Sequence record: MZ475891.1 | Direction: 5' to 3' (one strand) | Length of the DNA: 64,000 nucleotides | Shown here: positions 12,112 through 34,547 of the stretch, in pieces | Position numbering within the stretch: the stretch's first letter is position 1 | Layout: each line of letters opens with the position of its first letter | Translations under genes and position numbers: made by a program | The notes under the pieces: model-generated | Seen by the model: only the letters and a program-made list of their open reading frames with translations | Databases searched by the model: none | What the model was told of the DNA's origin: nothing

Positions 12112-12504
12112 GTGGACAAGAATGAAATCACGTTGTTGATCAATAGTCTTAACGGTAACCCAAAGAAGCCTTCTGACTATAACGATCTTCTGGGTAAGAC
12201 CGCAGGCGCCTTAGCCAAGTCTGAACAGAACATTGCGTTTCTGGTGAACAGCGATTTTGTTCATGAGAACATGCTACGTCTCGGTCGTGAAGAGGTAGCC
12301 CTCGATTGGTGGGAACCGTCTGAAACTCTCGACCAGTTATCGAAAGGCCTGCTCGGTAAGATTCACGACGTGCCTGTGTACGGTAACTGGTTCTATGTTA
12401 AGCCTGGCGATATTCCTAAGAAAGGACAGCCGCCACGCTTTGGCCTGTATCGTATCGATACTAAAGAGATCTTCCCGTTAAGCCCTGATTTGTTCTGTGC
12501 TTAA
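12112..12504 (+). CDS. Hypothetical protein, paralog of 12539-12919
   Basis: N-terminus MDKNEITLLINSLNGN; GTG start with AGGA RBS. Confidence 0.75.
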   Translation: MDKNEITLLINSLNGNPKKPSDYNDLLGKTAGALAKSEQNIAFLVNSDFVHENMLRLGREEVALDWWEPSETLDQLSKGLLGKIHDVPVYGNWFYVKPGDIPKKGQPPRFGLYRIDTKEIFPLSPDLFCA

Positions 12505-12538: not shown

Positions 12539-12919
12539 GTGGACAAGAATGAAATCACGCTTCTGATTGACAGTCTGAACGGCAATCGCAATTTCCCAAT
12601 CGATCCAGAAGCTGCAATAGGCATGACCCTTGAACAGTTCATCAAAACCAATGGGAACTTTGTGTTTCTCATGAATGATGCGCTCGTCCGTGACATGGTA
12701 AGTAAGCAGCATGAGTACGATCCAAACTTCGTACCAGCTACTACTCTCGACGAAATCAACAACGGTCTTATGGGAACTTTCCACGGCGTCAATGTGTACA
12801 GCACTTGGGTGTATCGTGCTCCTGGGGATCTGCCTGCGGAAGCGAAGCCTCGTTTCGGTATGTATCGCGCCGACCTAAAACAAATCTTCCCGTTGACTAA
12901 ACATTTTATCGTAAAGTAA
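12539..12919 (+). CDS. Hypothetical protein, paralog of 12112-12504
   Basis: N-terminus MDKNEITLLIDSLNGN; shared PRFG.YR.D.K.IFPL C-terminus. Confidence 0.75.
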   Translation: MDKNEITLLIDSLNGNRNFPIDPEAAIGMTLEQFIKTNGNFVFLMNDALVRDMVSKQHEYDPNFVPATTLDEINNGLMGTFHGVNVYSTWVYRAPGDLPAEAKPRFGMYRADLKQIFPLTKHFIVK

Positions 12920-12970: not shown

Positions 12971-13741
12971 ATGAGCAATATCGATACCACAATGCCTGAA
13001 GGCAAATGGGAGTTCAACGAGTCGGTTGCTTGCGTGTTTGATAACATGCTGCAAAACTCCATCCCATCTTATGCCCGTATGCGTGACCTGACGTATCGTC
13101 TGGGTCGTCGCTTCGTAACCCCGGGTTCAGCTATCGTTGATCTCGGTGCTTCACTCGGCCGAGCTATCGAGCCGTTTGCAAAAGAGTTCGGCAAGTATGA
13201 CTACCATCATGCTGCTGACGCTCCTGGCGAAGACTACGAAACAGGCAATCACTATAGCCTGTACGAAGTAGCGCCTGCGATGCGTGAACGTCTGGTGCAG
13301 AATGAAGTGCTCAACTCAGTGAATGCCAAACTGGAAAGTGAATCGCTGGTCGATGCAGACACGTTTATGTTTGATGGGCAAGTGCATTGCTCGCTGATTC
13401 TGAGTGTACTGACGCTCCAGTTCACGCCGATTGAACATCGTCAACACATTCTGGAAAACGTGTACAACTCACTGCAACCAGGCGGCGCATTCATCCTCGT
13501 TGAGAAGGTGTTAGGCGATAACAACTATCTCGACAAAATGCTGGTGGACACCTACTACCAGATGAAAGGCGGTAACGGTTACAGCGCCGAGTCGATTGCG
13601 ACTAAACGTAAGTCACTGGAAGGCGTACTCGTTCCTGTTAAAGCAGCGTGGAACGAAGAACTGTTGCGTAAAGCAGGCTTCGGTCAGGTAGAAAGTTTCT
13701 ATCGCGACCTGAACTTCGCAGGATGGATTGCTATTAAGTAA
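12971..13741 (+). CDS. cmoA: CmoA-like carboxy-S-adenosylmethionine synthase
   Basis: WEFNESVACVFDNM..SIPSY, DLGASLG, TLQF, LQPGGAFILVEK, KGGNGYS..I.TKRKSLE and AGF..V..F...NF all align with CmoA, including the KR Arg. Confidence 0.85.
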   Translation: MSNIDTTMPEGKWEFNESVACVFDNMLQNSIPSYARMRDLTYRLGRRFVTPGSAIVDLGASLGRAIEPFAKEFGKYDYHHAADAPGEDYETGNHYSLYEVAPAMRERLVQNEVLNSVNAKLESESLVDADTFMFDGQVHCSLILSVLTLQFTPIEHRQHILENVYNSLQPGGAFILVEKVLGDNNYLDKMLVDTYYQMKGGNGYSAESIATKRKSLEGVLVPVKAAWNEELLRKAGFGQVESFYRDLNFAGWIAIK

Positions 13742-13750
13742 GGAAATACT

Positions 13751-15013
13751 ATGAAAGTAAACGGGCGTATCTTAGCTATCGTCCCACACAAGACAATGCA
13801 AGACCGTACCAAGTCGGGTGTGGGTTCATACATTGATGGGCTAGAGGCCTACGGCTTCTGCGACTTTATCACAGACGGAGAGAATAGCTCCGTTACGAAA
13901 AGTCAGTGGTTCACTTATGGTGACACTACTCTCAGTGACGGTTATAAGATAGGGCATATCCAGAGCGAGTTGCTGATTGCACTTGAGCGTCTGCCTTACC
14001 GTGCGATTATTTGCAGCACGTATGAGGCGATTGAAGCCTGCGTGTCTCTAGGTCTGCCGAAGATTATGCCCGTTTACTATCGCACGCACAACAGCTTTTT
14101 GCTCACACAAGATCTCAAGGGTCTTGGTGCAGAGAAGATCCACCGTGCGTTGTTACAAGCGAAAGTCACAGGGCTGCGCATCCTTGCTAACTGTGATTCG
14201 ACTGCGATCAATCTTGCTGAGCGCTATAAGACGCCAGCGCACGTTGCCTACAACTCGTTCTCAGTGCCTGACTACAACCCACCAGCTAAACGTGTTCCAC
14301 AGTTGTTGATTATCTGTCGCTATGAGAAGGTCAAGCGCACGTTGTTTGCTGCGCGTATTGCTGCTGCATCAGGACTACCCGTTCGTGTTATGACAGGCAG
14401 TGATCGTCAAGCACGCAATTGGGAGAAAGAGCTGGCTGAGGCGGGCGTCAAAGAGTATACGGTCGTCAGTGGCCTTAGCGGCAAACAGAAACTCGAATTT
14501 ATAGGCGCTTGCACCGTAGCCCTTTCTACTGCGAGCGTTGAATCATTTGCTAATGGTGTGCGTGAGTCCATACCTTACTGCCCTACCTTTATCGTGCAGA
14601 CATCCAAGTACGATTGGGCTAAGGACTATACGCGCTTCTGTACCGCCGACAAGCATGTTCATATCAGAACTGTTGATCGCGTATCGGACCAAGCCGTAGC
14701 TGAAATCGGAAGTGAGATAGCGCAAACAGCTACCACTCGTTATCTGACAGGACCTCAGCGTAAGCAGCTACTGACTGCTTGGGCAAAGCAAGTTGATCGT
14801 GGTTGGTCCGACTTTGTTCAGAAGGCTGTTGTTGACGATGACGGCAAGCCGCTGCGCACCGAGCTGTATCAAGAACTGATCGACAAGTCAGAGATCGATT
14901 GGTCACAAACGCCCACGCTGATGCGTACTGTAAATGCGTTACATAAATGCCACGCTCGTTTGGGCCTGACATTTGATGGCACTAAAATCAAATATAAGAG
15001 GAAGCGCAAATGA
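13751..15013 (+). CDS. GT-B fold glycosyltransferase-like protein
   Basis: C-terminal domain CRYEKVKR...; EX7E motif ESFANGVRE. Confidence 0.65.
   Translation: MKVNGRILAIVPHKTMQDRTKSGVGSYIDGLEAYGFCDFITDGENSSVTKSQWFTYGDTTLSDGYKIGHIQSELLIALERLPYRAIICSTYEAIEACVSLGLPKIMPVYYRTHNSFLLTQDLKGLGAEKIHRALLQAKVTGLRILANCDSTAINLAERYKTPAHVAYNSFSVPDYNPPAKRVPQLLIICRYEKVKRTLFAARIAAASGLPVRVMTGSDRQARNWEKELAEAGVKEYTVVSGLSGKQKLEFIGACTVALSTASVESFANGVRESIPYCPTFIVQTSKYDWAKDYTRFCTADKHVHIRTVDRVSDQAVAEIGSEIAQTATTRYLTGPQRKQLLTAWAKQVDRGWSDFVQKAVVDDDGKPLRTELYQELIDKSEIDWSQTPTLMRTVNALHKCHARLGLTFDGTKIKYKRKRK
14928..14935 (+). promoter_or_regulatory. CTGTAAAT motif (putative phage promoter)
   Basis: 74 nt upstream of the 15010 start. 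Confidence 0.45.
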
Positions 15014-16086
15014 GTGTTATCGGTGATATTTATAACATCCCACAACCTTTCGCAATGTATGTCGGGAATTGTGAGACGCGTGCTCAAGCCAAAGTTGCTG
15101 CGGGCACAATCGAGTGGGCGCCAGAGAAAGTGTGCTGCACCGTAGATGATGGTAACAACCTGTTCCCTAACGTACCTTCAATCAACCCTGCTGACGTGCA
15201 TAAGACAGATGCAGAAACTTTAGTGATTGGCTGTGCACCTTTCGGCGGCCGCATTGACGAGCACATGGACAAAGCTATTCGTAGCGCTATCTATCGTGGA
15301 CGCAACATCGCTGCTGCTATGCATACGCGCCTGGCGGATAATCCTGAATACGTTGAGCTGGCTGATCGCTACAACGTCAAGCTGTATGACTTCCGCCATC
15401 GTCCTGATGCGTACCCACTCGGTACTGGTGAGAAGCGTAGCGGTCTGCGTCTGTTAACTGTCGGTACTGATAGCTCATGCGGTAAGAAGTTTACCACGCT
15501 GTCTCTGTATCGTGAACTCAAAGCTATTCATGAAGCCACTACGTTCTGCTCTACTGGCCAGACGGGTTTCTTGATTAGCGGTTGCGGTATCAACAACGAC
15601 ACGATTGTTGCCGACTTCCTTGCTGGTGCCGCTGAATCACTTTCGCCTGATGGTCCTGCTGATCATGTTTATCTGATTGAGGGTCAAGGCGCTATCACGC
15701 ACCCAGCATACACAGGCGGCAGTATGAGTCTGATTGCTGGCTCGCAGCCTGATCATCTCATCCTGTGTCACGCATGGAACCGTCAGAATCAGTTGGGCGT
15801 TAAGCGTAAGCCTGACCTTGATTTTGAGATGCGTGCTAACATTGAAGCGGCACGTATTCACGGTCTCAACCCGACTTACATCGGTATCAGCATTAACTTC
15901 TCTGAGTGCAACCTCACCGCCGATGAGCAAGATAAAATCCTGTACCAACTCGCATCCACGTATGAGATTCCCGTGTTCGACCCCTCACAGGACACTTCTG
16001 TGTTGCGTGACCTCGCTCGTATGTTAGCAACTAAAGCCAAAGCAAGGAGCCTCGATGGCCAAGCATCCCCTACGCAAGCTGTTTGA
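15010..16086 (+). CDS. DUF1611 family P-loop protein (DgcN-like N-acetyltransferase family)
   Basis: VGTDSSCGKKFT, STGQTG, DFLAGAAE, IEGQGAITHPAY, GSQPDHLILCH. Confidence 0.8.
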   Translation: MSVIGDIYNIPQPFAMYVGNCETRAQAKVAAGTIEWAPEKVCCTVDDGNNLFPNVPSINPADVHKTDAETLVIGCAPFGGRIDEHMDKAIRSAIYRGRNIAAAMHTRLADNPEYVELADRYNVKLYDFRHRPDAYPLGTGEKRSGLRLLTVGTDSSCGKKFTTLSLYRELKAIHEATTFCSTGQTGFLISGCGINNDTIVADFLAGAAESLSPDGPADHVYLIEGQGAITHPAYTGGSMSLIAGSQPDHLILCHAWNRQNQLGVKRKPDLDFEMRANIEAARIHGLNPTYIGISINFSECNLTADEQDKILYQLASTYEIPVFDPSQDTSVLRDLARMLATKAKARSLDGQASPTQAV

Positions 16087-16930
16087 ACAGCATGTGAAAA
16101 AAGAAGTGAAAGCAGACAAGGTAGCTGTACTGCTTTCATCTGGCCTCGATGGTTTGGTTGGCGCATTAGCTGCACACGACCTGGGCAAGAAGGTACATGC
16201 CTTCACATTCCAAATGGGTGACAACCCTAGCTTTGACAGTCGCCACGCACAGATTGTTGCGCAGAAGATGGGTTGGGAGTTCACGCTTGTTAAAGTTCCC
16301 ACCAGCGTGTCTGCTATCGCATTAGCATGGCGCGTGTTGCACTCCAAATATCGCTGCATCAAGAAGCGTGACTATGAGTGTGCGTACCCTATGGTCTATT
16401 GCTACAAGGCAATCAAAGACGCTGGGTATAAGTATGTGCTAAGCGGGCTGGTGGCTGATGGTTACTTCCTGTATAACCGCAACACGCACATTCAGAAAAT
16501 CAGCGGGCCACACTCTGACGCTCAGAAGTATCATGAGTTCCGTACTCAATACTTTAGTCCGTGGCTTAAACACGGTAAGAAGTCTCTGGGCGTTGACGGG
16601 TACAACCCGAGCGGTATGTTGCAGCATGAAATGTTGTGCGATAACTTCGGCCTGATTCACGTTAACCCGTGGATGCAGAACAAGGTGTTTGACTACTTCA
16701 TCAAATACACTTGGCAGGAGCTGAATCAGCCTAAGCAGAAGATGCCACTAACCGAAGCGTGGGCAGAACACATTGCTCTTGTTGGTCATCGCCCACACAG
16801 GGGCTATCAGACAGAAGCCAAAGTGCCTGAATACTTTGAGCATCTGATCGATAACCCTGAGATTAACTTTAACGGGCGCAAGCGCATCATGGACGTGGCA
16901 CGCGACTGGTCCAAACGAGAGCCTGAATAA
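16055..16930 (+). CDS. ATP-dependent amide ligase (asparagine-synthetase C-terminal domain only)
   Basis: PP-loop LLSSGLDG and VLSGLVADGYF (cf. VLSGEGADELF); no N-terminal glutaminase domain. Confidence 0.72.
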   Translation: MAKHPLRKLFEQHVKKEVKADKVAVLLSSGLDGLVGALAAHDLGKKVHAFTFQMGDNPSFDSRHAQIVAQKMGWEFTLVKVPTSVSAIALAWRVLHSKYRCIKKRDYECAYPMVYCYKAIKDAGYKYVLSGLVADGYFLYNRNTHIQKISGPHSDAQKYHEFRTQYFSPWLKHGKKSLGVDGYNPSGMLQHEMLCDNFGLIHVNPWMQNKVFDYFIKYTWQELNQPKQKMPLTEAWAEHIALVGHRPHRGYQTEAKVPEYFEHLIDNPEINFNGRKRIMDVARDWSKREPE

Positions 16931-17448: not shown

Positions 17449-17901
17449 ATGAATCTGTTTTCTATTTTAAAACAGCAAGTGAAGAAATCCCTGACGACCG
17501 AAGCAACGCTTGAGCCAGAAGTGCGCAAACACTTTGACTGGCGTTTCAGTGTTGACGTCAAGGGCATGATGTACATTGTAGGCAAGACAGGCGCTAACAC
17601 CTGCTTCTATCTTGAGCCAGGTCACGTTGAGCCTACTGCCTGCTATCCTGATGAACTGCTTGCGAAGATTGATAGCTGGGGCGCTGCGAAGTACGTGTCC
17701 TACGCTGTCTACTTCAAGAAGTTCAGTAGCCCTGTAGCTGAGAACATCAAGACGCTTGAGCAGGCCAAGACAGGCAAGCCTAAAGCGTTTAAGAAAGGCT
17801 ACTTTATCTGTGGCGTAACACCGAAAGGTAAGCGCGTCAAACTGTGTCGTCTGCACAACAGCCTAAGCGGTATGCAGTGGGTTGATGTAGACCAGAAGTA
17901 A
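17449..17901 (+). CDS. Hypothetical protein
   Basis: 150-aa ORF with GAGG RBS. Confidence 0.7.
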   Translation: MNLFSILKQQVKKSLTTEATLEPEVRKHFDWRFSVDVKGMMYIVGKTGANTCFYLEPGHVEPTACYPDELLAKIDSWGAAKYVSYAVYFKKFSSPVAENIKTLEQAKTGKPKAFKKGYFICGVTPKGKRVKLCRLHNSLSGMQWVDVDQK

Positions 17902-19557: not shown

Positions 19558-19959
19558 ATGAGACCTGAAAACATTTCACGCACCTATCGCGTCGGTCAGT
19601 CTGACCTGGAGAAAGCACACAATGTCTGCGGAGAGAACAATGTAACACTCTCAGATGTGGTGCGCAGATACATCGAAAGAATCGTACTGACTGAGGGTGA
19701 GTTCCTTATGAACGAGCGTAAGCACGTACCTGAGTCCCAACTGAATGTACGCCTGCCCTTTTATATTGCGCACTCCTTTGCATCTGTGTGTAAGTCTCGT
19801 GGTACGTTAGCCTCTAAAACCATTCTCAACTTTGTCAAGAATATTGCTCTTTCCGGGACTATCCCTGAGGAGTTAAAGTATGCTTCTGACGCAGAGTTGC
19901 GTGCCTATATTACCTCAGAGCGCTCTCGCCTCGATGCACTGGAAGCAAAACTCAAATGA
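19558..19959 (+). CDS. Tandem ribbon-helix-helix DNA-binding protein
   Basis: Two RHH-like units: SRTYRV...TLSDVVRRYIERI and LNVRLP...LASKTILNFVKNI. Confidence 0.6.
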   Translation: MRPENISRTYRVGQSDLEKAHNVCGENNVTLSDVVRRYIERIVLTEGEFLMNERKHVPESQLNVRLPFYIAHSFASVCKSRGTLASKTILNFVKNIALSGTIPEELKYASDAELRAYITSERSRLDALEAKLK

Positions 19960-20795
19960 TTCTAACTAGTCCCATTCGCTATCAGGGTAACAAGCGCACT
20001 CTGATGCCTCTTATTCTCGAACATGCGCCTGTGAAGGATTGCGTTCGCATGATAGACGCATTCGGTGGTAGTGGTACTGTTGCGCTTAACATGCCGCACA
20101 AGTTTCGCATCTACAATGAGCTGAGCACGCCTGTGTTTGAGATCGTCCAGTTGCTTGCGCATCAAGACCCGAAGAAAACATTGGGTCAGATTAAGCGTAT
20201 CGTCAAGCGTTTTTGTCTAACCAATAGCAGCCAAGACAACTACGACATGTTCCGTGCGTATGTGCAGAAGAAGCCTAGCCCTCTTCACCATTATATCGCA
20301 CACAGGCACGCACGCTCTAACATGCTGCGCTTCAACCAGAAAGGCATCTACAACGTGCCGTTCGGTGAGCGTGGTCTGATTGGTAAGTTCGATCAGCTTG
20401 AGCAGGAGCTGGTGCAGTTCCACGAGCGTATGCAGAACACGCACATCACCAACATGCGCTATAACCTGTTGCTCAAGTCCGTGTCAAAGCATATCGGACC
20501 GAACACGTTCATTTACTTTGATCCTCCGTATCTTGCTAGTGGTGCGATGCAGTACGGCAAGTGGACTGAGCACAACGAGCGCAACCTGCTGTCCGTGCTT
20601 GAGTATCTGAATCGTCAAGGCTGCCCGTGGATGTTGAGTAACGTTCTCCAGCATCGGCACCACACGAACGACTTGCTCAAGCGCTGGCTAAAGAAACACG
20701 CAACGACTGTCATCTATCCTGACAAGTCTTATTCAATGGCCAACTCTCATTCCGATAGTCACAGCACTATCGAGATTCTGGCAATGAACTACTGA
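19956..20795 (+). CDS. dam: DNA adenine methyltransferase (Dam family)
   Basis: SPIRYQGNK, DAFGGSGTV, YNVPFG, YFDPPY, WMLSN. Confidence 0.9.
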   Translation: MILTSPIRYQGNKRTLMPLILEHAPVKDCVRMIDAFGGSGTVALNMPHKFRIYNELSTPVFEIVQLLAHQDPKKTLGQIKRIVKRFCLTNSSQDNYDMFRAYVQKKPSPLHHYIAHRHARSNMLRFNQKGIYNVPFGERGLIGKFDQLEQELVQFHERMQNTHITNMRYNLLLKSVSKHIGPNTFIYFDPPYLASGAMQYGKWTEHNERNLLSVLEYLNRQGCPWMLSNVLQHRHHTNDLLKRWLKKHATTVIYPDKSYSMANSHSDSHSTIEILAMNY

Positions 20796-31711: not shown

Positions 31712-32410
31712 ATGGCAAAAATTGCTAAAGCAAAGGAAGGGAAAAAGAAAAGCAACCCTATGTTGATTGACCTGAAAAAGTTCAAGTCAGTTAAACAGCT
31801 TAAGGGTGCGAAGTACAACCCTCGTTTCATTACAGACAGCCGACTGAGAGCGCTCGAAGGTTCTTTGGGCAGCTTCGGTGATTTGTCTGGCGTGGTGTTC
31901 AACAACAGCGTGGACAGTGGCGTGCTGATCTCAGGCCACCAGCGCCTCAAGTCGATTGAGAAGTGGGACTCGCGCATTGAGATTCAGCAAACGTCTGACA
32001 AGTACGGCACGGTAGCGCTGGGTTATATCCATGCCACCAGCGCCAAAGGTAAAACGATCAGCATCCCACTGCGTATCGTTAACTGGTCAGATAAGAAAGT
32101 GGAGTTTGCTGCTAACATTGCCGCGAACGCCCACGGCGGTGAGTTCGATAACAAAAAGCTCGCGTCACTTGTCGAGAAGCTGGACCTGACTACAATCAAG
32201 CCAGCTCTTATCGGGCTTGACCCGTTAGAGATTCGCGGCCTGCAACAGACGCTGAGCAAACAAGCTATCGTCGAGCAGGAAAAGCGTGTTGGTAAAACAA
32301 CAGGCAAAATGAACGGCAGCACCGGCGAGTTCAAAGAGTACACGACTGATGAAGTTGGTACTGCGCTGACCTGCACCTGCCCACGTTGTGGCTTTAAGTT
32401 CGAGGGATAA
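31712..32410 (+). CDS. ParB/Srx-like N-terminal domain protein with C-terminal zinc ribbon
   Basis: KYNPR, LISGHQRLK, ANIAAN; CTCPRCGFKF. Confidence 0.78.
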   Translation: MAKIAKAKEGKKKSNPMLIDLKKFKSVKQLKGAKYNPRFITDSRLRALEGSLGSFGDLSGVVFNNSVDSGVLISGHQRLKSIEKWDSRIEIQQTSDKYGTVALGYIHATSAKGKTISIPLRIVNWSDKKVEFAANIAANAHGGEFDNKKLASLVEKLDLTTIKPALIGLDPLEIRGLQQTLSKQAIVEQEKRVGKTTGKMNGSTGEFKEYTTDEVGTALTCTCPRCGFKFEG

Positions 32411-32411
32411 C

Positions 32412-34547
32412 ATGATCATCAAGCCGCCTACAATGAAAGAGATTAATAAGCTGCCCAAGCCCTGGTCAGGTATGAGTTTCTTTGCAGGTTGCGGTGGTTC
32501 ATCTACCGGTCACAAGATGGCCGGCATTAACATCCTACTGAGCAACGAGTTCGTGGACGCGGCTCGTGAATCGTATGAAGCGAACCATCCAACAACCAAA
32601 GTGTTGCCCCACGATATTCGTCGTCTTGACCCGAAAAAGCTGCTTAGCTATTGCGGCCTGAGCCAAGGCGAACTGGACTTGCTTGACGGCAGTCCTCCGT
32701 GCTTCACCGAAGACACGTTCATTCATACTGACACTGGTATGAAGTTCATCACTGATATGCGCATCGGTGACTTCGCTATGACCTCTGTTGGTAAGTATCA
32801 TCCTGTGTATGACACGATGGTGCGTCCGTATGACGGTCAGATGCACAGAATTGAAACGCTGCTCGGTCAGAACAATGCAACACCTGAACACCCATTCTTT
32901 GTTCGTCGTCAGAGCGAAGAAGGTGGCGGGTACAGTGCGCCGTTCTGGTGTGACGCTAAAGATGTGCAGGAAGGTGACCTGTTAGGTACGCCTCGTGTTA
33001 CGCCTGACATGGGTGAAGCACACACGCACGAGATTATCTCGTCGTTGACCGCGCAGCTTGTGCGTTGGATTGCATTGCCTGAGTTCTGGTGGCTGATTGG
33101 ACACTGGTGCAATCGCGGTGCAATCGATAAGATTCGTGGTGTCGATGTTATTCAATTCACCTCGATGACAGCGATGGAAAACTCGCTGGTGGAACAAGCG
33201 TTCGACGTGCTCAAGTTAAGCAGCATCAACAGCGCTTCGTCCGACATGGGCGTTCATCGTAAGACCGTTCGTGTTGTTATGGACACAGACCTGTTGCTGT
33301 TCTTGCGTATGTTCATCGCACAGGGCAAGAAGTCTATGTCACGCCGTCTGCCTGGCATGATCTTCCATCTGGCTAAAGAGCTGAAACAGCAATTCATTCT
33401 CGGCTATCTGGGTCGTGATTACGTCACAGCAATGGGCGTTGGTCATGCGTTAGAGGCTGACTCAAAGCGCTTCCTCGTTGAGATGAATTACCTGTGCTGC
33501 TCTGCGTTCAACCGACCGCTGTTCGATGCAATGTTGTTCACTGACTTGCACTACGGCAGTCCGATGTTACCGCCGAGTCGCTTCATTACCAAAGAGCACA
33601 TCGGCTTCCTGTTCTTGCAAGAAGAGGTTAATTTCTTCTTCGAGTTCGAGCCGGAAGACCCGCATCTGTGGGTTGAAGTGATTGAGAACTTTACGCACCA
33701 TGAAACGTGCAACGTCTATAACTTCTCAGTCAGTGTTGATGAGACGTATGTTGCTAACGGCATGGTCGTGCATAACTGCAAAGGGTTCTCGACTGCTGGC
33801 GTGAAAGAAGACGGCTGGGGTAAAGAGGTTAAGTACAGCGGCAACAAGTATCAGCAAGTCGATGACCTGTTCGATCAGTATTGCCGTATGCTCAAGCACA
33901 TGCAGCCTAAAACGTTCACTGCGGAAAACGTTAGTGGCCTCGTTAAAGGTGCGTCGAAGGGTTACTTCATTGAAATCATGAAGACCTTTGATCAGCTGGG
34001 TTACTATGTGCGAGCACCGTTGCTTAATGCTGCGTGGCTTGGTGTGCCTCAGTCTCGTGAACGTATCATCTTTATGGGTGTGCGCAAAGACGTGGCGAAA
34101 GCACTCGGTTATAAAACTGCGTTGACTGCTGTGCCTGATGTAACACCTCAATCAAGCATGGCATTCCTTGCAGATGCATTGCCGAACATTCGTCGCTATA
34201 AAGGTACGGAGCGTGACATTATCAAGTATCTGCCTGCTGTTAACGGGCCGATGCCTACGATTACCGCCGCTGACGCTATCGCATACGAAACAGCACGCTT
34301 CTCCTCTGCTGGCTTCATTGAAGACGACAAAGGGCACAGACGCAAGCTGACGATTGATGAACTCAAAGTTGTATCAGGCATGCCTAGTGATTACGTGCTC
34401 ACAGGTAAGTTTGAAGAACAATGGGAACGTCTCGGTCGTGTGTGCGTACCTGCAATGACGTGTGCTGCGGCAAGCGCGTTGATACGCCATGTGCTTGAGC
34501 CTTACGCGAAGCTGCGTAAAAAGAAACCTGGGGATCGTTTTCGTTAA
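32412..34547 (+). CDS. DNA cytosine-C5 methyltransferase homolog, intein-containing (candidate carboxymethyltransferase)
   Basis: Motif I FFAGCGG, IV SPP/CKGFS (split), VI ENVSG, VIII QSRERI, IX RKLTIDE, X LGRVCVP; ATG 32412. Confidence 0.88.
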   Translation: MIIKPPTMKEINKLPKPWSGMSFFAGCGGSSTGHKMAGINILLSNEFVDAARESYEANHPTTKVLPHDIRRLDPKKLLSYCGLSQGELDLLDGSPPCFTEDTFIHTDTGMKFITDMRIGDFAMTSVGKYHPVYDTMVRPYDGQMHRIETLLGQNNATPEHPFFVRRQSEEGGGYSAPFWCDAKDVQEGDLLGTPRVTPDMGEAHTHEIISSLTAQLVRWIALPEFWWLIGHWCNRGAIDKIRGVDVIQFTSMTAMENSLVEQAFDVLKLSSINSASSDMGVHRKTVRVVMDTDLLLFLRMFIAQGKKSMSRRLPGMIFHLAKELKQQFILGYLGRDYVTAMGVGHALEADSKRFLVEMNYLCCSAFNRPLFDAMLFTDLHYGSPMLPPSRFITKEHIGFLFLQEEVNFFFEFEPEDPHLWVEVIENFTHHETCNVYNFSVSVDETYVANGMVVHNCKGFSTAGVKEDGWGKEVKYSGNKYQQVDDLFDQYCRMLKHMQPKTFTAENVSGLVKGASKGYFIEIMKTFDQLGYYVRAPLLNAAWLGVPQSRERIIFMGVRKDVAKALGYKTALTAVPDVTPQSSMAFLADALPNIRRYKGTERDIIKYLPAVNGPMPTITAADAIAYETARFSSAGFIEDDKGHRRKLTIDELKVVSGMPSDYVLTGKFEEQWERLGRVCVPAMTCAAASALIRHVLEPYAKLRKKKPGDRFR
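32700..33776 (+). mobile_element. Intein (359 aa) with degenerate LAGLIDADG-like region
   Basis: Starts CFTEDT, block B ATPEHPFFV, ends NFSV...VANGMVVHN, followed by Cys. Confidence 0.92.

Follow-up and report, generated by a model that had tools for sequence, protein, structure and literature searches.

We analysed bases 1-64000 of the genome of Erwinia phage pEa_SNUABM_13 (MZ475891.1, 264,714 bp), a jumbo phage of Erwinia amylovora, and find that a cmoA homologue in this 64,000-nucleotide stretch (the window) very probably encodes a true carboxy-S-adenosylmethionine (Cx-SAM) synthase and not a generic methyltransferase, as judged from its sequence and a structural model. On sequence and comparative grounds, the enzyme is most likely a dedicated source of Cx-SAM for carboxymethylation of cytosine in phage DNA, within a CmoA–CmoX–CmoY system. 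We put the probability of the whole explanation, in which a Cx-SAM synthase feeds cytosine carboxymethylation by CmoX, amide coupling by CmoY, the action of extra enzymes and protection against restriction, at roughly 75%. A CmoA–CmoX–CmoY system was published in December 2025 for Synechococcus phage S-B43 by Yang et al. in Nat Commun (CmoX structure 8YF3), with demonstration of the three enzyme activities and of the modified base in virion DNA (PMC12783734). The focal gene is a further member of this known system; new here are the glycosyltransferase and DgcN-like genes that accompany it and an intein in CmoX. The gene and the two elements within it that concern us are:

12971-13741, + strand: cmoA homologue, predicted Cx-SAM synthase, ATG start, 256 amino acids
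13196-13255, + strand: lineage-specific CmoA insertion YDYHHAADAPGEDYETGNHY, residues 76-95, a beta-hairpin ahead of strand beta2 in the model
13607-13609, + strand: codon of Arg213, equivalent of E. coli CmoA Arg199 in a 124-sequence alignment

Identity of the cmoA product

The sole significant family matches of the window CmoA were to the two NCBIfam CmoA models, TIGR00740 (E 6.6e-40, 137.3 bits) and NF011995 (E 1.3e-29, 103.4 bits). Pfam returned weak generic methyltransferase domains and nothing else, and the PHROG match was phrog_4752 (E 1.9e-78). The best sequence matches in the PDB were E. coli CmoA and H. influenzae YecO, with E values of 1e-25 to 3e-28 (2.8e-28 for 4GEK by phmmer). 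Judged by these scores, the likeness to the CmoA family is far beyond chance. An AlphaFold2 model built on 64 homologues (predicted local distance difference test score (pLDDT) 91.8, predicted template modelling score 0.90) shows the class I Rossmann fold of methyltransferases, including the N- and C-terminal elements that are specific to CmoA. Its top Foldseek match in the PDB was 4GEK, with a template modelling (TM) score, normalised to the target, of 0.87; the best six were all CmoA or YecO chains (4GEK, 4IWN and 1IM8; E 5e-22 to 2e-19, TM 0.84-0.90), followed by CysG/BelI methyltransferases. Sequence, AlphaFold model and gene context all favour a Cx-SAM synthase, an activity that we infer for the window protein from homology, retained residues, fold and gene context. 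All of the genes discussed here are hypothetical in the GenBank record of pEa_SNUABM_13. UniRef already names relatives of the window CmoA Cx-SAM synthase; the RefSeq name for cmoA of the sister phage pEa_SNUABM_7 (97% identity to pEa_SNUABM_13; genus Snuvirus), tRNA methyltransferase, is probably misleading.

The first-pass annotation had argued for a Cx-SAM synthase from one cofactor-binding arginine. As it proposed, the segment GYSAESIATKRKSLE (residues 203-217, nucleotides 13577-13621) lies column for column on GYSELEISQKRSMLE of E. coli CmoA, without a shift in either pairwise or multiple alignments, and Arg213 sits in the column of E. coli Arg199, the residue that makes a salt bridge with the carboxylate of Cx-SAM (PMC3663124). 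Arginine occupies this column in 121/124 family members. Byrne et al. list the residues through which E. coli CmoA contacts its cofactor (PMC3663124). When these were mapped in the 124-sequence alignment, Tyr39 (Y34 in the window CmoA), Asp62 (D57), Gly64 (G59), Ser66 (S61), Ala70 (A65), Phe137 (F151) and Arg199 (R213) proved to be kept. Asp89 is replaced conservatively by Glu99, and the active S-B43 CmoA likewise has Glu. In the Arg199 column the experimentally active S-B43 enzyme also has Glu, with an Arg four residues, or one helical turn, later; for this reason the arginine is supportive, not decisive. Its presence is expected of a Cx-SAM enzyme, yet it is neither a sufficient nor a strictly necessary marker. 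The synthase assignment is supported by the CmoA-only matches, fold, contacts and context, a sum of evidence stronger than the single-residue argument with which it began.

An extra insertion after the loop that binds S-adenosylmethionine (SAM) had been pointed out as well. It is present at residues 76-95, between SAM-binding motif I and strand beta2, although the net gain is about 15 residues and not 20, because 35 residues separate the motif-I Gly from the ribose-binding acid in the window CmoA, compared with 20 in E. coli CmoA, 21 in S-B43 CmoA and 18 in that of PaBG, a Pseudomonas jumbo phage. This spacer measures 18-22 residues in 102/124 aligned sequences and 32-38 in the other 22, a set that comprises the window CmoA, the 19 homologues closest to it (identity of 69% or more) and two more distant sequences. 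The model places strands at residues 77-79 and 89-91 of the insertion, and the mean pLDDT of the ten-residue blocks over residues 71-100 is 97, 89 and 98.

Pathway genes and the probable use of Cx-SAM

Using tblastn of the window with S-B43 and PaBG proteins, we located the remaining published pathway genes. They are listed here with their neighbours and with the parts of cmoX:

13751-15013, + strand: predicted GT-B (GT4-like) glycosyltransferase, 420 amino acids, 9 nucleotides downstream of cmoA
15010-16086, + strand: DUF1611/DgcN-like protein, 358 amino acids, 4-nucleotide overlap with the glycosyltransferase gene
16055-16930, + strand: predicted CmoY-type ATP-dependent amide ligase, 291 amino acids (PF00733, E 6e-13)
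31712-32410, + strand: ParB-like gene directly upstream of cmoX, 44.6% identity to the PaBG ParB-like nuclease-domain protein
32412-34547, + strand: cmoX homologue, predicted cytosine-C5 carboxymethyltransferase, 711-residue precursor, PF00145 on both exteins
32412-32699, + strand: cmoX N-extein (PF00145)
32700-33776, + strand: intein in CmoX, 359 amino acids (Pfam Intein_splicing, E 6e-8; Hint_2; splicing motifs)
33777-34547, + strand: cmoX C-extein (PF00145)

The use of Cx-SAM for DNA modification, already suggested in the first-pass annotation, is strongly supported by a CmoX homologue that has both the SPPC motif and the Arg that binds Cx-SAM, and by a CmoY-type ligase gene within the cmoA block. 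The cmoX open reading frame (ORF) spans 32388-34547, with ATG at 32412 as the most likely start, as in the RefSeq annotation of the sister phage; its public labels are hypothetical or simply methylase. Its two halves are parted by 1,077 in-frame nucleotides in one continuous ORF. The best PDB match of the C-extein was 8YF3 (E 5.8e-33), followed by M.HaeIII (E 3e-12), and after in silico excision of the intein S-B43 CmoX aligns with the exteins along their length. The homologue has the SPPC and ENV motifs and, in place of the motif-X Asn, an ERLGR Arg aligned with SpCmoX R350; every residue named by Yang et al. is kept (Phe25, Glu47, Phe48, Asp69, Ser-Pro-Pro-Cys and Arg350). In the S-B43 enzyme, Phe25, Glu47, Phe48 and Asp69 serve the cofactor, Arg350 stands where ordinary methylases have the motif-X Asn and binds the carboxymethyl group, and Cx-SAM is the only cofactor accepted (PMC12783734). 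Because the window CmoX has Arg for this Asn and S-B43 CmoX accepts only Cx-SAM, the phage needs a source of Cx-SAM.

The intein splits the SPPC motif of CmoX precisely where Ser-Pro-Pro would join the catalytic Cys. Its splicing motifs are intact: the first residue is Cys1, a TxxH block stands at residue 61 and the last two residues are His-Asn; Cys-Lys-Gly-Phe-Ser follows, the +1 residue being the catalytic Cys of the SPPC motif. The intein is shared by 51 records of jumbo phages of Erwinia, Dickeya and Yersinia, with identity as low as 53%; PaBG lacks it. Two LAGLIDADG-like stretches, judged by eye, lie in its middle. The ParB-like protein encoded directly upstream of cmoX gave nothing at E <=0.01 in a Pfam search. 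Its sister-phage counterpart is named ParB-like partition protein in RefSeq, the PaBG ParB-like nuclease-domain protein likewise precedes the PaBG C5 methylase, and Yang et al. report a ParB-type gene beside cmoX in many contigs (PMC12783734).

The cmoA block itself comprises four tightly packed genes on the same strand (12971-16930), separated by a 9-nucleotide gap and then by overlaps of 4 and 32 nucleotides. A promoter and terminator scan of 11-18.5 kb gave sites that were not in excess over shuffled sequence. The glycosyltransferase ORF (13751-15013) had no Pfam, PHROG or PDB sequence match; its assignment draws on ESM Atlas neighbours (GT4/Glycos_transf_1, score 0.98), on Foldseek matches of an AlphaFold2 model (pLDDT 79.8) to GlgM, BshA, the phage HY126 glycosyltransferase and MshA (E 5e-10 to 1e-8), and on PF00534 in one of seven homologues (P0127). 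The DgcN-like protein matched PF07755 (E 2e-46), PF17396 (E 5.5e-18) and PDB entry 7XRJ (E 3e-53); the N-acetyltransferase DgcN, of the D-amino-acid N-acyltransferase family, is its closest relative, at 289.8 bits on the NCBIfam DgcN model, below the cut-off of 480. The CmoY-type ligase consists of the asparagine-synthetase PP-loop domain only (PP-loop SSGLDG), with no glutamine amidase domain. S-B43 CmoY matched it over its full length by tblastn (E 3e-45, 33-35% identity), and the window ligase has a 13-residue insertion. Beyond the block, a 150-residue ORF at 17449-17901 shares 33% identity with PaBG_00179, a small gene that PaBG carries between cmoA and the ligase gene, and the product of this ORF may be a conserved uncharacterised component of the system.

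In the pathway that we propose, CmoA would convert SAM and prephenate to Cx-SAM during infection, and the intein-containing CmoX would use Cx-SAM to transfer a carboxymethyl group to C5 of phage DNA cytosines, giving 5-carboxymethylcytosine (5cxmC). The CmoY-type ligase, with ATP, would then couple an amine, probably an amino acid, to the 5cxmC carboxyl, and the glycosyltransferase and DgcN-like protein would probably lengthen the side chain or help to provide it. Cytosine hypermodified in this way would guard the phage genome against host restriction. Which amine is coupled, what the two extra enzymes do and the protection from restriction in Erwinia are parts of this scheme that we infer.

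CmoA might instead mainly raise Cx-SAM for host CmoB, tuning wobble uridine 5-oxyacetic acid (cmo5U) and decoding for phage translation, with DNA modification secondary or absent. Enterobacterial hosts carry cmoB, and the RefSeq label of the sister-phage gene refers to tRNA. Synthesis of tRNA cmo5U is also the original role of CmoA (PMC3663124; PMC10491745). However, cmoA is packed with a CmoY-type ligase gene in a genome that encodes CmoX, and neither serves tRNA cmo5U. We found no tRNA gene and no CmoB-like sequence in the 64 kb searched. Among 50,697 phage records CmoB had one match, a 3.4-kb Salmonella record that also matches cmoA and looks like host DNA, so that no real phage in this database carries CmoB. 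We consider this reading unlikely. A tRNA role via host CmoB may exist as a side effect of Cx-SAM production for DNA modification, and nothing in the phage calls for it.

Several observations weigh against a Cx-SAM supply dedicated to DNA carboxymethylation. The window CmoA falls below the equivalog cut-offs (137.3 versus 193.3 bits for TIGR00740; 103.4 versus 285 bits for NF011995), and three E. coli side-chain contacts are lost (Asn90 to Val100, Asp117 to Met133 and Asn132 to Val146). The first 64 kb hold no gene for prephenate supply, namely 3-deoxy-D-arabino-heptulosonate 7-phosphate (DAHP) synthase. The cmoA and cmoX genes, although on the same strand, lie 18.7 kb apart and do not form a single gene neighbourhood, and CmoX, as its predicted intein indicates, can act only after splicing. 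Regarding distance, the criterion of Yang et al. is co-occurrence of cmoA and cmoX on one contig (PMC12783734), and both genes do lie on one contig in pEa_SNUABM_13. The scores and lost contacts, together with weak methyltransferase matches alone in Pfam and the insertion of about 15 residues near the cofactor site, could also indicate a CmoA descendant that has become an ordinary methyltransferase without Cx-SAM synthase chemistry. Yet a missed equivalog cut-off is no evidence against activity, because the biochemically proven S-B43 CmoA scores lower still on TIGR00740 (115.6 bits) and is also under the cut-off on NF011995 (102 bits). The same enzyme shares two of the three replacements: the Asn90 and Asn132 positions hold Leu in S-B43 CmoA and Val or Ile in most phage-type homologues. 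Asp117 is kept in 87/124 sequences and lost in the clade of the window CmoA. Moreover, Arg199 has no role with plain SAM but is conserved almost throughout the family, and the CmoX Arg at the Asn site of SAM-using C5 methylases calls for a Cx-SAM source. We regard loss of synthase chemistry as very unlikely.

Variation of the locus among related phages

The predicted Cx-SAM synthase and CmoX recur together in Erwinia jumbo phages, with 48 Erwinia phage records matching the window CmoA and 48 matching the intein-containing CmoX over its full length. What lies between cmoA and the ligase gene varies. The layout is cmoA-glycosyltransferase-DUF1611-cmoY in the Snuvirus group; the pEa_SNUABM_3 group has a block of this type plus an alanine/serine-racemase-like gene; Alexandra and AD1 have cmoA-DUF1611-cmoY; and in Y3 and others a PaBG-type ligase gene directly follows cmoA (42% identity to PaBG, about 25% to the window ligase). 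Among phage records the DUF1611 family is confined to Erwinia and Dickeya jumbo phages, and in all records examined for gene order its gene follows cmoA at a distance of about 2.1 kb or less. The fullest version of the cluster is on a more distant, metagenomic jumbo-phage contig (L095; CmoA 60% identical), in the order cmoA, an 84-residue protein, glycosyltransferase, DUF1611, racemase-like enzyme, ligase and DAHP synthase.

Prephenate, the co-substrate of CmoA, is made by the shikimate pathway, whose first step is catalysed by DAHP synthase. The L095 enzyme (14162-15022) scores 180 bits on TIGR00034 (aroFGH), above the equivalog cut-off of 173, and in a second related jumbo-phage contig (L007, 11331-12287) the DAHP synthase gene is two genes from cmoA. 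Its position inside or beside related cmoA clusters fits real Cx-SAM synthase chemistry in the clade. The link is supportive rather than specific because the gene is also common in T4-like phages, many of which carry it, and we rejected it as an exclusive marker of CmoA. The same data bear on the idea that CmoA mainly benefits the phage by depleting host SAM against SAM-dependent defences, as phage SAM lyases do, with Cx-SAM as a by-product. Yang et al. pose this as an open question, and S-B43 CmoA forms Cx-SAM at ten times the rate of E. coli CmoA (PMC12783734). Such a drain leaves unexplained both the retention of CmoX and CmoY with CmoA across Erwinia jumbo phages and the DAHP synthase genes of related clusters, which would raise co-substrate supply. 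We judge it highly improbable as the main function; SAM depletion is compatible with a Cx-SAM supply for cytosine carboxymethylation and could add to it.

The variable genes also bear on the final base. A pyridoxal phosphate enzyme, alanine/serine-racemase-like, is encoded between the DUF1611 and ligase genes in the pEa_SNUABM_3 group (L021:13072-14004) and in L095 (12322-13284); a search of the window for an alanine-racemase-like gene found none. Its presence in sister lineages hints at a D-amino acid as the amine coupled to carboxymethylcytosine. Because the glycosyltransferase, DgcN-like and other enzymes are kept together with cmoA, the final base appears to be larger than glycyl-carboxymethylcytosine, with a D-amino acid and a sugar possibly involved. 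A more specific proposal is that the cmoA block of Erwinia and Dickeya jumbo phages, having gained the glycosyltransferase and DgcN-like genes and, in sister lineages, those for the racemase-like enzyme and DAHP synthase, builds a cytosine adduct that is both new and larger, such as a (D-)aminoacyl-carboxymethylcytosine with subsequent glycosylation or acylation. Ligase cassettes exchanged between lineages would diversify the base, and the pathway would be active only after protein splicing at the catalytic Cys of CmoX; we offer this tentatively, as conceivable but on balance doubtful.

More distant cmoA genes show a different context. Most phage and prophage cmoA genes with 40-51% identity to that of the window have no CmoX or CmoY within 6-10 kb. 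Instead, a fusion of about 500 residues, joining ParB_N to a class-I methyltransferase-like part, is encoded about 1-1.5 kb upstream of them. It stands beside cmoA in 41/46 informative IMG/VR loci and 39/80 bacterial-assembly loci, at 39-100% identity and in several phyla (IMG/VR loci L030 and L037-L094; genome loci L099-L176; for example, L075:8003-9514). We rejected the fusion as a CmoB-like protein, as it has no similarity to CmoB beyond motif I and its methyltransferase part has no PDB relative. The fusion may represent a second family of DNA transferases that depend on Cx-SAM; Yang et al. state that no second such family was found (PMC12783734).

Other observations concern the surroundings and distribution of the gene. 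Directly upstream of cmoA are two tandem paralogous ORFs, 12112-12504 (130 amino acids) and 12539-12919 (126 amino acids), which are 44% identical, both begin MDKNEITLLI, have no family match and occur as a single copy in pEa_SNUABM_7. A Dam-like, D12-class N6-adenine DNA methyltransferase is encoded at 19956-20792 (PF02086, E 9e-26; 70% identity to AD1 gp027), and because of this gene the phage DNA is probably adenine-methylated too. CmoA proteins 81% identical to that of the window occur on a 266-kb contig of a Salmonella Infantis assembly (P0009) and on a contig binned as a Raoultibacter metagenome-assembled genome (L097); both contigs probably represent related jumbo phages whose sequences were assembled or binned with bacterial genomes by mistake. 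In public sequencing runs, 35-39% of sampled words were found, in DNA metagenome or contig runs only and in no RNA or long-read run.

With these findings, the newly described carboxymethylcytosine pathway reaches beyond a marine cyanophage to jumbo phages that can be cultivated and that infect an enterobacterial plant pathogen. Erwinia jumbo phages are under development as biocontrol agents for fire blight, and DNA hypermodification bears on restriction escape, sequencing and cloning. Close phages with different ligases and extra enzymes at the same position amount to a natural experiment, in which a few isolates could reveal how a carboxyl handle on DNA becomes different bases.

Comparison with known systems

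Erwinia phages, PaBG, DUF1611, glycosyltransferases and inteins go unmentioned in the main text and part of the supplements of Yang et al., and a comparative jumbo-phage review does not mention CmoA, DUF1611 or carboxymethylation. The window resembles S-B43 in having the same three enzyme families in one phage genome, an amidase-less ligase gene beside cmoA and a ParB-type gene beside cmoX, with identities of 28% for CmoA, about 31-55% per extein for CmoX and 33-35% for CmoY. Unlike S-B43, it has cmoX 18.7 kb from cmoA, a 359-residue intein before the catalytic Cys of CmoX, glycosyltransferase and DgcN-like genes between cmoA and cmoY, and a CmoA that keeps Arg199 instead of Glu and carries the insertion of about 15 residues. 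The host is an enterobacterium, whereas S-B43 is a marine cyanophage.

Among the matches listed, PaBG has the closest phage relative of the window CmoA outside Erwinia and Dickeya jumbo phages. Its cluster encodes a ParB-like protein, a C5 methylase, CmoA, a 150-residue protein and an asparagine synthase, and identities to the window are 42% for CmoA, 48% for the CmoX exteins and 45% for the ParB-like protein. In contrast to the window, the PaBG genes are contiguous, the methylase is intein-less, there is no glycosyltransferase or DUF1611 gene, and the ligase is of a different subtype (24-26% identity). The engineered carboxymethyltransferase M.MpeI N374K and the natural-product CmoA homologues TglE and MccS also use Cx-SAM as a carboxymethyl donor outside tRNA biology, as proposed here, but these are engineered or small-molecule/peptide systems with no likeness in gene context to the window locus.

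E. coli CmoA (4GEK, 4IWN) and H. influenzae YecO (1IM8) share the fold of the window CmoA, which retains motif I, Tyr39, Phe137 and Arg199. Its alignment with E. coli CmoA is free of gaps over the C-terminal 118 residues, and identity in Foldseek structural alignments is 27-29%. Unlike the E. coli enzyme, the window CmoA has no partner CmoB and has insertions after motif I and before strand beta3. Its probable downstream acceptor is DNA cytosine, whereas that of the E. coli system is 5-hydroxyuridine (ho5U) in tRNA.

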